Shown in pieces: positions 30,938 to 57,120 of a stretch of 64,000 nt of DNA (its first letter is position 1; each line of letters begins with the position of its first letter). The position numbers were made by a program, and so were the translations under genes. Source of the stretch: Eutreptiella sp. 'Long Island Sound 2002'. Taxonomy: Eukaryota; Protista; Euglenida. Where the stretch lies: the NCBI GenBank assembly GCA_964036045.1, contig OZ038378.1:199392001-199456000 (forward strand), in the 5' to 3' direction. Below the pieces are notes generated by a model. That model worked only from the letters and a program-made list of their open reading frames with translations. It made no database searches and was not told the origin of the DNA.

Positions 30938-31828
30938 CTGGGGACAGCGGTGGCGCGGGCAACGGCGGCGGAGATCGCTCCGGGGCTCCGGTGGAGCACC
31001 GCACGCACCCGGAGGGGGACTGACGGACGCCCGCCGCCAGGCGCCTACGCACGCGCGCAGGCGACCGACCGAGGCATGACCTGCGAGAGCCCCCCCACTG
31101 TACGGAGTGGGCGGTGGGTGACCTTGTCTTCTACCTGACGCGCCACCTGGAGTAACGGCTCAGGTCGATGTACGGAGTGAGCTCGGGTACGGGCTGCGCG
31201 CATTCCTGGGGTCGTGTTGGTGGTATGGGGCACGTGCAAAACAATGGGATAATGAAAGAAATCGGCCAAAGGGATGGAACATTGGTATCCCCGAGGGGTC
31301 AAAGCACGATGCACTTCTGCGTCGTACTTGGGCATCCCCCAACTGAATGACGCAACTGGAAATGCGTGCTCTGGCCCATGAGGCGCAGATGAATGAGGCA
31401 TGCAAATGCAGAACGTGCAGAATGAAGACAGAGGGTTGAGAAAGACGAACATGAGTGGGCCTGCACACTGGTGACCCCTTGGTAAAATAGAATATCTTTA
31501 ACTTGGAATGGGGTGGATGATGCAATAACAATGCAGTCGAGTACACCACATTCCCGAACTGGAGTGAAATGACCCCTTCCTATTATACTCTGTCCACTGT
31601 GGATGGTGCAGTGCAATTACCAACTGTCACTGTTGTTTGACTGCGATTGCCCAGCAGCACCCGGACCAGCCATGCTGGGAGAAGAATTTCCGACTGCACT
31701 TACGAATGGTCAACGGCGGGGGGTTAGAATGTGGAAAATGTGCCTCTGCTTGGGCAAGAAACAGCCGACTTTGCACACAGCGCGCACACAGCGCACAGTG
31801 CGCCCCCAAACAAACGCACGCATGCACG

Positions 31829-32095
31829 CACACACACACACACACACATACACACACACACACACACACACACATACACACACACACACATACACACACA
31901 CACACACACACACACACACACACACACACACACACACACACACACACACACACACACACACACACACACACACACACACACACACACACACATACACACA
32001 CACACGCGCGCGCACACACACACACACACACACACGCACACGCACACACACACACACAAACATGCACACACACAAACGCGCACGCACACACAGGC
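31829..32095. repeat. (CA)n microsatellite, ~270 bp
   Basis: Direct observation. Confidence 0.98.
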
Positions 32096-35000
32096 ACACA
32101 GGGTAAGACTACAAACACAAGCCGCCAGACCACAAGTGTCATGAAACTTTGCATCAGGTGAAAGCATCCTAAGCCGCTGACCCCAAAACGACCGGCCCAT
32201 TCCAAACATCCGCAGGGTACTGCAGCAAATGGTCTCTATCGATTGCTGTTTTGTCCTGACACTTCCTCCACTCTTGCAGGGTGGGGCAAGCAGGACATCC
32301 TGGCTGCAGAGGTCCCCCCCCCCCCTGGGAGCAAATTCAGCGAATCCCCAGAGACACGGAAATACTGCAACTGGCGAAAACAGATTTGTGCCACAAAGTG
32401 ACCGCTGAGAATCAGCCGACAGGTGCTGCGGCACATGCTAAGCGCGGACATGAGATTGCCCTCATCTTCCCCTGGTGGGCCTCCAGGGCTTGAAACGGTG
32501 TGGTGCAGTATCTGTTCTCTGCAGGCCCACCCCCGAGTGCACTGCACTATCTTTCGGTAGCATGAGGGGCCCTTGCCAACTCGTATTGCTAGATATGGAC
32601 TGGTAGTCGTTCTGCATAATTGTTGGCAAACCGAAAACTACATCATACAAAATGAAAATGCTTGCACAAAAGTGCAATATTTGGGAGCATGCCTCAACAA
32701 GCTTGAAATCTGCCAACCGGGATAAACACATCCAGCACAAATTGATTCAGGGTTGCGGTCACTGTTGGTGCAACCAGTCAGGTCTCAGGCCCCCTTTGAA
32801 GGTGTAGTACCAGCAGGTCGCCAAGAGCATGTGCACGATGGCCAAAAACGATGGGGCAGTACTTGCGCCACGCATGTGCACACTACGCGCTACTTGGGTG
32901 GCAAATACAGCCGGAATGTGCTGATTTCCCCCTCCCAAATGTCCCCTAAGGAGAGCAAACACTATTGTAGATACATCCCCCTTTCCCACAAAAATAGCAC
33001 AATGCAGAGCACAATGCAATTGGCACCCACTTCATGATCTTTGAAACGGCCCTTGGCCTGTTGTGGCAAATTGCGCTGCTTGCCAAATAAGCACATCCGC
33101 AGAGGTGCTTGGCGCGAGAGGACAAATCCAAACATCAACACAACACCTTTCGTGTGGACGCCGCCAAATAGCCGTGCTGTGTACGCGCAACATCAAGTGC
33201 TCCCCCTGTGACTCGACCCAAGTGGCTCAGATTGGGCCTGATTTTTGCTGAATGACAACTTGCAATACAATATGAAATTAATAACGTTCGCACACTGACG
33301 TCTCATGGCAGTTGTGCTGCTAGCGCATTGTGCACTGTATGCGTATGCAATTCCTACCCCTCATGCATGGTGCTAGCATTTTGATTGATTGGTTTCTCAG
33401 TGTGCACTTACAGCCCGAAGGCTAGGCTTCCATTTGAAGTGCGTAGGTGCGGAATTAGGATCTGTGGTGGGTTTTGTCTTTGGTGAACCATGCTTTTTGC
33501 GTAAGCCATTTGGAGGGTGCTTTGAAAACCCTGCATGGAAATCTCTCGGCATTCTCTGGGGGAGTTTCTTTGAGAGCATCTGTGTGGCTGCTTTCCTTAA
33601 TTGCGGACAGTTTGCATGAATGTAGCGTAAATGGCCTCATCGCCATGGCAAGGATACCCCAGTCAAAATTGGACTGACCACGTGGACCGTGTGGATGAGT
33701 GCCAAAGGCCCTGTACAACTCGGCGGTGGACCACAGCAGGGAAAATTCTAGGCCACCAACACCCACTATGAAAAAAAGCAACTGGTGTTTAAACAACAGC
33801 AGTTGGTACTTCAACAATAGCAGTTGGCCAGCACCGCTGTCGGTAACCAATATTGGTTGGCTCGTGGCTGCCAGCAATCGGCAGGCGCTCCTGCAGCCTT
33901 AAGCCTTATTGGGAAATACACATGAGTCACTAAGGAGGGCCCTGAAGCTCCAACCAAATGCCAGTTGAGGTCATGTTTGGCAAAACCTAGAAGATGTGGG
34001 GTGCTGGAAATCGTGTTCATGACACCTTGGGGCATCCACATTGTGTTGAAAAGCACAAATATCATGCTTTTGCATAGAACCCGTGTTCATGGGTTAAGCC
34101 GATTTTCAGCTCATAGGCATGCAGCCTCGTCTTGTTGGGTCACAAATTGAGTGGATTTGGACACCTATGGTTGCGCAAGAAGTGAATTGTCTATTTGGGT
34201 GGATGCACGGTCGGTGCTGACACAGTGCTTGCTACTCGCTCACATAGATCGCCAACTGAGGTTGGCAGCCAATGATTGCACAAAAATTGAAGCGTCAAGC
34301 ATGCCTTAGCCCGGTACCTATGGCCCACCATCAACCCAAAATTTGCAGGAAAAAAAATGATTGTGGACCCCTCACGGTCCCAACAGGCTATCCGCTGATT
34401 GGAGGGGGCTGGGCAGGAGAGGGGATGGTGAGTGTCCTTGTCCTGGTCCCCAAACGTCCAAACTGTCTAATGGGCCGGCTCCAACTTCAATAAGGGGAAA
34501 GGGGCAATTACACCTCAGTGCATTGGGCCTCTGTAGGAGGGTGCCCCTCCCCGTGTAAAGATTTGAGATGGTCCCCCTCCTCTCTCTGGAAATAAGACAC
34601 CAGACGCCCCAAATTTGGCAAACTTCTGTCATGACATGTCAACCTCCCCCATGGAACACTGTAGTTGTGATCTAAAGGTGGGGAGCAATGTAAATCAGTT
34701 GCAATGCGCATCAACCTGGGCAGGTATTTGGATTCGGTTGGACAGAATACCTATCATTCATGGTGGACATTGACTGTATGCTACATTGAAACTGCACCCA
34801 CTTGTTCACTCCAAACATGGCCCCACTTCAAAGGGGAGGTAACAATTAAAATTTGCCCCCTCCGCTCCCCCCCCCCCCCCCGTACAACCCCACCACACCC
34901 CTCTATGGGAGCTCCCGGGGCCCTGTGTGGTCCAAATAAGGGGTGCCTTGCACCGGGCGGCTCCAACAGCCAACCTGGCACGATAGCAGCGGGAGCACGG

Positions 35001-55730: not shown

Positions 55731-57081
55731 CTGATGGGAGGAGCAGCAGACGTGCGAACATAAAATGCCAGTGCCAGGGCTTGGCGGGCTTTCACTTCCG
55801 GGGGGGGGGGGGGGTCGATAGAGCCCTCCGGCCGGACCCCCCCCCCCAAAAGGGCTCAATTGACGGGACCCCCCAAAACCAACCTGGGGACGTCTGTGGT
55901 TCCAATGACGGTGGTATTTGTGTTTCAGGACACAAGGCCCCCGGTCAATTCTGGCTACACATGTATGTAGTGCCTCACCATGGCCTATCATTAGAACCAC
56001 ATGAGCTGGGGGGTGCCTAACAAGGGGACAAAATCAGAAGTGCATAGCCCCTGCCAAAAGTGGCTCCTAAGCTTCTTTTGAATAGTGACAATGGTGTCTG
56101 TCAATGGAGCTCTTTTCCCGAACCCTCCCCCCCCCCCAGTTTTTGGCTCTCTATCGACCTCCCCCCCCGAAAGTGAAAACCCGGCGCCCCCAGAGCCTAA
56201 TCTTACATCTGAGCAAAGCCATAGAAGCCCACTACATGCGCTCCCCCAAGCCGTGGAACCCCCCCCCCCCCACTTAAGATACCCCCCCCCCTACTTATCG
56301 TACACCCCCTGGGAAGCCACGAAAATCAAGTACCTAAGGGACCCCCCTTTGGTGAAACACCTCATAAACAAAGCAAGACAACGTTCTATGCCCCCATTGG
56401 ATAAACTGCCCAGATCAGAACCTTCAGAACCGTCACCCACATCATCACCATTGACAACAAAAGAGTTCAATGCAATGTCTGCCATGTCTAGAACTGCAGT
56501 ACCACTATGGCAAGAACTGCAAACGTAAAATCTGCAATGTGAAGGACACACCCCCACTTATTGTACCCCCCCCCCCCCCGGACTTATCGTAGCCCCCCTT
56601 AGGAAGCCAAAAAATTTCAGTTCGGGATCGTACCCAGGGGTACGATTATGGGGGCTGGGGGAGTTTACACATCAGCTGGACAACGGCATTGGTCACGTGT
56701 GCATGGTAGCAGCTGCTGCCCCACCATTCAGCCACCTGCCCGCGCCCTGTTCTGTGGGCAAGGGCAAATGGAACAGTTCCGTTGCCAGACCTACAGAAAC
56801 TCGCACCGTCTTTCCTGAGGATGGTATATGCGCTCGCTCGTTAAGGCAATTGGCAGTACAGACTGGGGCCTTTTTTTTTTTCACGGGCAGCTTCGTCTTT
56901 TATCTTTTCCATTTTTGAGCCCAGCGACCAACGGGCGTTGGCCGCTGCTGATTCACTGGGCACCTCAAATCAGCATCGGGGGAATCAAGGCTGGTGTCGG
57001 TTCACAAATAGAGCATTTTAAATTACTTCATTCCACGTGCTTGCACGCTCACTCACTCACTCGCTCATGCACACGCGCACG

Positions 57082-57114
57082 CACACACACACACACACAG
57101 AGAGAGAGAGAGAG
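57082..57114. repeat. (CA)n(GA)n compound microsatellite next to the donor of the 26-kb intron
   Basis: Direct observation. Confidence 0.95.
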
Positions 57115-57120
57115 GGAAAC

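Follow-up and report, generated by a model that had tools for sequence, protein, structure and literature searches.

The 64,000-nucleotide stretch of Eutreptiella sp. 'Long Island Sound 2002' DNA analyzed here (contig OZ038378.1, positions 199,392,001 to 199,456,000; hereafter the window, whose numbering is used throughout) is eukaryotic DNA that contains introns of the GT-AG type as well as microsatellites and dispersed repeats. On its minus strand lie two multi-exon genes. One, which we call the host gene, encodes a predicted amylase-like barrel followed by a domain related to formylglycine-generating enzyme (FGE). The other encodes a GH20 beta-N-acetylhexosaminidase, and all six of its exons are found between two consecutive host exons, in the same orientation as the host and within what we interpret as a single 26,183-nt host intron. 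We describe the two genes and the intron in turn, and then consider how such an arrangement might be expressed.

Four host exons were located by tblastn, all on the minus strand. The most upstream, exon Z, falls beyond the window in the flanking DNA of the source contig (L001:1271-1504, equivalent to ~66,333-66,100 in window numbering). Exon A (61213..61410; 66 codons, VLLPYNPWDSGTR...YATMAL) corresponds to homolog residues ~152-219 and is bounded by the acceptor ctcgcag|GTG and the donor CTG|gtatgc. Exon B (57121..57510; 130 codons, GSNVTFASLGW...WEPHYPTLLPGE) corresponds to homolog residues ~220-334, lies between the acceptor gtgtcag|GGC and the donor GAG|gtttcc, and codes for the final part of the amylase-like barrel. 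Exon C (29729..30937; 402 codons plus stop, coding 30937-29732) covers homolog residues ~334 to the end. It begins with VFASRF at 30937, directly behind the acceptor tccccag|GTG, and codes for a beta-sandwich, a linker and an FGE-sulfatase-like domain, with a match to PF03781 at 5.3e-34 (118.5 bits against a Pfam cut-off of 23.3). The boundaries of exons A and B are in phase 0, and the three host introns, of 4.7, 3.7 and 26.2 kb, all share this phase and the form G|GT...CAG|G.

An earlier note on this DNA, drawing on bacterial homologs, had proposed that exons B and C encode directly contiguous parts of one protein. Comparison of 35 full-length homologs with the window by tblastn bears this out, with adjacent homolog residues falling on the two exons, at 57124 and 30937, and no gap between them. 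In P0076, for example, residues 225-330 align to 57489-57124 and residues 331-702 to 30937-29735, and at the joint between the exons the sequence ...WEPHTPVLRPG(331)|V(332)YASKF of P0047 stands opposite ...WEPHYPTLLPGE|VFASRF in the window. Exon B is matched with E-values between 1e-21 and 1e-30, and exon C with E-values between 1e-78 and 1e-105. The same note had seen no alternative continuation between the two exons, and the tblastn search likewise returned no other match to the downstream part there, even at E<5. Pairing of the two halves with paralogous exons is also not observed in the window, which holds no second copy of either half at E<5, barring a very weak FGE-like relic at 62493-62221.

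When exons Z, A, B and C are joined they give 676 residues, free of stops and frameshifts, that retain 50 of the 52 invariant and 114 of the 124 near-invariant residues of a 78-sequence family alignment. The retained residues are found on both sides of the 26-kb intron, and to judge from its sequence the host looks intact on either side of it. The open reading frame list shows no in-frame ATG, GTG or TTG between the preceding stop and 30937; exon C therefore has no start codon before the conserved sequence begins and is not a gene in its own right. Taking together the contiguity of the residues, the splice sites and their phase, the conserved positions and the missing exon C start, by far the simplest reading of exons Z, A, B and C is that they belong to one host gene. 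An annotation based on open reading frames had broken this gene into unrelated fragments (P0001 and P0121).

The relic mentioned above (62221-62493, minus strand) lies in the host intron between exons Z and A and resembles, weakly and in decayed form, the beginning of the family's FGE-like domain, with 25-29% identity over ~95 residues and the key residues lost. The E-values are 3e-4 to 6e-2 for the whole window and 9e-5 when a 2.6-kb subregion is searched. It could be the remnant of an old duplicated exon, or a chance resemblance.

The GH20 gene (38021..55658, minus strand; 17,638 nt, 691 codons) was modeled from Pfam matches and splice sites. Its exons are E1 (55658-55269, starting at the ATG at 55658), E2 (52954-52754), E3 (52246-51818), E4 (47431-47057), E5 (44801-44328, carrying the catalytic HLGGDE) and E6 (38227-38021, including the stop at 38021-38023). 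The introns between them are all GT-AG, phase 0 and 0.5-6.1 kb long, close to the 0.1-6 kb that the earlier note gave for the other introns here, and the frame has no internal stop. The E1 donor was picked among candidates and is the one uncertain splice site of the model. Pieces of PF02838 (GH20b) and PF00728 (GH20 catalytic) are matched above their cut-offs, in order and on the same strand. With this 691-residue open frame, the description in the earlier note of a complete six-exon GH20 gene inside the intron and on the host strand stands.

The GH20 protein has an N-terminal hydrophobic anchor (MPRKPRLPWRVFLICIMVTFALL) and keeps the motifs RG.MLD..RH, HWHLTDDQGWR, HLGGDE (the catalytic Asp-Glu pair) and LWTE. 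A single GH20 exon compared with the PDB finds beta-N-acetylhexosaminidases (best 7dvb, 1.6e-35), with most of the top matches under microbial-type names (Nag2, chitobiase) and human chains far weaker. Relative to other GH20 beta-N-acetylhexosaminidases the order of GH20b and catalytic domains and the motifs are the same, but here five introns interrupt the gene and a low-complexity, proline-rich N-terminal extension of ~130 residues follows the membrane anchor.

The GH20 reading frame is open from 56033, upstream of the ATG, and this stretch contains two pyrimidine-rich ..CAG| acceptor-like sites on the minus strand, at 55694 and 55730 (36 and 72 nt upstream of the ATG, in frame). We regard these as candidate acceptors, predicted to accept either a spliced leader or, by cis-splicing, exons of the host. 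All eight mapped introns, three in the host and five in the GH20 gene, are phase 0 and of the form G|GT...CAG|G, and thus any host exon could join any GH20 exon in frame.

The host intron that encloses the GH20 gene (30938..57120, minus strand, between exons B and C; GT..AG, phase 0) sits at the barrel/sandwich boundary of the predicted host fold. In addition to the whole GH20 gene it holds high-copy dispersed repeats (~55806-56230) and microsatellites at 57035-57125, 42521-42618 and 31825-32100. From the host donor to the GH20 ATG there are 1,462 nt, and from the GH20 stop to the host acceptor 7,083 nt. Subtracting the 17.6-kb gene from the intron leaves ~8.5 kb, which is close to the size of the other local introns. 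No long direct repeats that would suggest a recent cassette insertion were found flanking the GH20 segment. The region from 31 to 38 kb has no Pfam-detectable open reading frames, and the window as a whole contains no Rfam families, no tRNAs and no relics of dinoflagellate or Euglena spliced leaders.

Two of the intron microsatellites, (CA)138 at 31825-32100 and (TG)49 at 42521-42618, are complementary and form a 98-110-nt inverted repeat with its arms 10.5 kb apart, which could pair in the pre-mRNA. The dispersed repeats within the intron and nearby (~55806-56230, 57711-57776, 59214-59455 and 59781-60239) reach a summed word depth of ~10^4, as against 3-40 for unique sequence, in the sequencing runs that behave as genomic DNA (described below), and contig joints connect their copies. 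In some of them there is a core of G-runs or C-runs (family D4, which also has copies at 40832 and 41369). Their appearance is that of a short mobile element, present in very many copies and residing in introns.

We sought to place the host protein by way of its relatives. Those of exon C number in the hundreds, are ~700-730 residues long and 44-55% identical, and are mostly bacterial, although some are algal (Prymnesium parvum P0276 and MMETSP transcripts); an exhaustive HMMER search with exon B alone retrieves the same family. Its N-terminal ~450 residues have no Pfam model, and the members P0122 and P0124 are without the FGE domain. An AlphaFold2 model of P0276 (49% identical), computed on the family alignment with a predicted local distance difference test (pLDDT) score of 91.7, has a (beta/alpha)8 barrel, then a beta-sandwich, then an FGE-like domain. 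Foldseek gives FGE, pFGE and EgtB as the top structural matches of the C-terminal part, and GH13 and GH66 amylase-like enzymes for the N-terminal part. On the basis of this model we predict with high confidence that members of the family join an amylase-like barrel to an FGE-like domain. For EgtB, SenA and PvdO the NCBIfam scores are far too low to reach the cut-offs. The family is probably not a strict formylglycine-generating enzyme.

In the verrucomicrobium Oleiharenicola and the xanthomonad Pseudoxanthomonas the family gene adjoins genes for GH127, a PfkB sugar kinase, a TonB-dependent receptor and a family-III CoA-transferase (loci L003, L004 and L005). From this context the family appears to lie in sugar-utilization loci and to be an uncharacterized family of sugar-utilization enzymes. 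The host protein itself, by its sequence, is a bacterial-type product of ~730 residues encoded by a multi-exon gene. It shares both the three-part architecture and the length of those SUMF1/EgtB/PvdO (PF03781) proteins that have an unnamed N-terminal ~450 residues, but the gene here has at least three introns, including one of 26 kb. A side result of the analysis is that this large, mostly bacterial family, unnamed over its first ~450 residues, now has a predicted barrel and FGE-like fold.

The suggestion in the earlier note that both products are bacterial-type and glycan-related thus agrees with the microbial PDB matches of the GH20 protein and with the amylase-like barrel and sugar-utilization loci of the host family. 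Neither a functional or ancestral linkage of the two genes nor a shared origin in a bacterial operon is supported, because in both of the bacterial genomes examined the host-family gene stands beside GH127 and not beside GH20. Co-expression of the two as an 'operon within an intron' may be considered a candidate reading.

The DNA itself shows the layout of the locus, the exact contiguity of the host exons, the intact coding sequences of both genes and the consensus splice sites. Taking these observations together, we think it probable that the locus is a genuine same-strand nested gene in which a phase-0 intron of the host holds a complete, separately translatable six-exon GH20 gene. Host mRNA would then most likely arise through ordinary cis-splicing, 57121 being joined to 30937 across the entire length of the GH20 gene. 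The GH20 protein would be translated from its own mRNA, produced from its own promoter and/or by addition of a leader at an acceptor just 5' of the ATG, at 55730 or 55694; the leader route presumes a trans-splicing euglenid. Formation of the GH20 3' end and completion of the host transcript would be in competition, and since the former would cut the host pre-mRNA, a given primary transcript would yield the host or the GH20 product, probably not both.

A variant of this scheme, to which we give limited weight on the sequence features available, has the host pre-mRNA serving also as a precursor of polycistronic type. Leader addition 36-72 nt 5' of the ATG, together with polyadenylation, would free the GH20 mRNA from within the 26-kb intron, and the acceptor at 30937 would be either cis-spliced to exon B or capped with a leader. 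If this were so, one promoter would give rise to two or three carbohydrate-enzyme mRNAs, in proportions that depend on how cis-splicing, trans-splicing and 3' end formation compete.

Read data bear on these schemes in part. We examined read contigs over 55430-61429 from four runs, three of which behave as genomic DNA and one as RNA (an estuary metatranscriptome). The three DNA-like runs, which carry two organism labels, contain single-copy contigs over exon B, over its upstream intron and over the intron past the microsatellite at 57035-57125. These contigs flank the microsatellite (for example 57126-57754 and 56626-57012) and support the assembly locally. The microsatellite itself was masked in the read alignment, so that alignments stop at 57126 and the donor is unreadable. 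Within the same 55430-61429 interval the RNA run leaves uncovered the unique parts of the introns, GH20 exon 1 and the 200-nt bin in which exon A falls. When metagenome contigs were scanned for the exact sequence of the spliced B|C junction no match was obtained, and since a control scan with the end of exon B was equally blank, this result is uninformative.

Several observations weigh against a functional host spliced across the GH20 gene. The estuary metatranscriptome holds 48% of the exon B words, with exon C below threshold, and the RNA run provides one 200-nt contig, mismatch-free over 57126-57322, which lies inside exon B and leaves the B/C junction uncovered. The evidence for continuity of the DNA is limited to the donor side of the 26-kb intron. 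Among 5.8 billion proteins, searched at lengths of 72-227 and 221-833 residues, the only ones more than 55% identical to exon C or more than 50% identical to exon B are the genomic open reading frames of the window itself; a 476-residue read-through frame used as query had widened the length range searched to 262-833 residues. An exhaustive HMMER search likewise returned nothing else at high identity. There is consequently no assembled transcript of the host on record in the lengths searched. Finally, the locus is near the end of its contig, and the first ~70 codons of the host were not found in the 5.3 kb left up to the contig end.

The absence of a transcript-derived host protein from the record, the missing 5' end and the size of the intron, four times that of any other here, would all fit a host that had been recently disrupted, with a rearrangement or segmental insertion placing the GH20 gene in a host intron and leaving a young, still undamaged split pseudogene. 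We regard this as unlikely. It is difficult to reconcile with four open exons that keep 50 of 52 invariant residues, with consensus splice sites at both ends of the intron and with the lack of insertion hallmarks such as flanking direct repeats. Exon B is, moreover, present in runs of both organism labels, which attests the locus and not the nested arrangement. An error of assembly, in which the contig misjoins two regions and gives a false picture either of the 26-kb spacing of the host halves or of the GH20 gene as lying between them, would find some encouragement in the position of the locus, 14-40 kb from the end of a 954-kb (954,106-bp) source contig, and in the microsatellites and high-copy repeats of the intron, where masking of 57035-57125 hides continuity across it. 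Such a misjoin would have had to fall by chance within an intron while keeping the host halves in the right order and orientation, and independent runs give single-copy contigs on either side of the donor region; we consider it very unlikely.

Other possibilities accept the arrangement of the DNA and differ in how it is processed. In trans-splicing organisms such as nematodes and kinetoplastids, acceptors that have no donor upstream serve as substrates for leader addition. It is conceivable, if rather improbable, that GH20 3' end formation cuts the host pre-mRNA, that the acceptor at 30937, deprived of its donor, receives a leader, and that exon C is expressed as a 5'-truncated mRNA. An internal methionine would then give the FGE-like domain alone, the Z/A/B portion would be truncated or unstable, and full-length host protein would be made rarely or never. 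The position of the intron between two domains of the predicted fold is compatible with such separate mRNAs, as are the failure to find exons B and C in the same RNA run and the existence of family members that lack the FGE domain. Set against this, exon C has no in-frame start before the beta-sandwich, yet the residues of the sandwich are kept as well as the rest, which argues that exon C is translated within the full protein; nor do RNA data support the proposal. Regular production of barrel-GH20 fusions, by in-frame splicing of exon B to an acceptor 5' of the GH20 ATG or to GH20 exons, appears highly improbable. The in-frame acceptor-like sites at 55730 and 55694, the frame open from 56033 and the uniform phase 0 of the introns of both genes would permit it, but none of the retrieved homologs shows a barrel-GH20 fusion in its precomputed Pfam domains, the hydrophobic anchor would end up internal, and there is no RNA support.

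Downstream of the host gene the plus strand carries a multi-exon polyprenyl synthetase gene (~14820-18120), seen as three open frames that match PF00348 positions 5-94, 97-173 and 174-248 in succession. The window thus carries genes in both directions, this one on the plus strand and the host and GH20 genes on the minus strand.

For a same-strand nested gene, the preferred reading of the locus, our analysis confirms the first observation and adds to it four host exons, a model of the GH20 gene in six exons, and an account of the host family's fold and of its genomic surroundings. Its present value is mainly a correct gene model for annotators. Greater interest would attach to it only if RNA were to show release of the GH20 mRNA from the host transcript by trans-splicing. 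With two intact genes, introns all in phase 0 and clear acceptors, the locus would be a convenient test case for competition between splicing pathways. Euglenids perform conventional cis-splicing, non-conventional splicing and spliced-leader trans-splicing, and same-strand nesting puts a second set of splice and 3'-end signals into the host pre-mRNA, an interference whose avoidance or use by cells is only partly understood.

The earlier note held that most nested genes are antisense. This stands for human nested genes, ~63% of which are on the opposite strand, but the rarity of the same-strand configuration was overstated, since ~37%, over a third, are on the same strand (PMC3192792). The arrangement seen here is a large-minority one and not an oddity, and belongs to a known kind of gene organization. 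Our literature search found nothing on nested genes in Euglena; extensive polycistronic transcription is held to be unlikely in Euglena gracilis on account of its sparse genome (PMC6366073).

The closest parallels to the locus are the same-strand intronic genes of animals. As there, a complete coding gene occupies one host intron in the orientation of the host, and the host must be spliced across the splice and 3'-end signals of the nested gene. The nested gene here is large (17.6 kb, six exons), whereas those of animals are often short and single-exon (~41% of human nested genes are single-exon; PMC3192792), and euglenid trans-splicing would add a processing route that animals mostly lack. 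A second parallel is with the spliced-leader polycistrons of kinetoplastids and the operons of nematodes, in that same-strand genes could come from one primary transcript and that acceptor-like sites, candidates for leader addition, stand just 5' of the GH20 ATG. A leader on the GH20 mRNA and a shared transcript are predictions, and the window has no leader relic. The genes of those polycistrons follow one another in tandem, whereas here one gene lies within an intron of the other.

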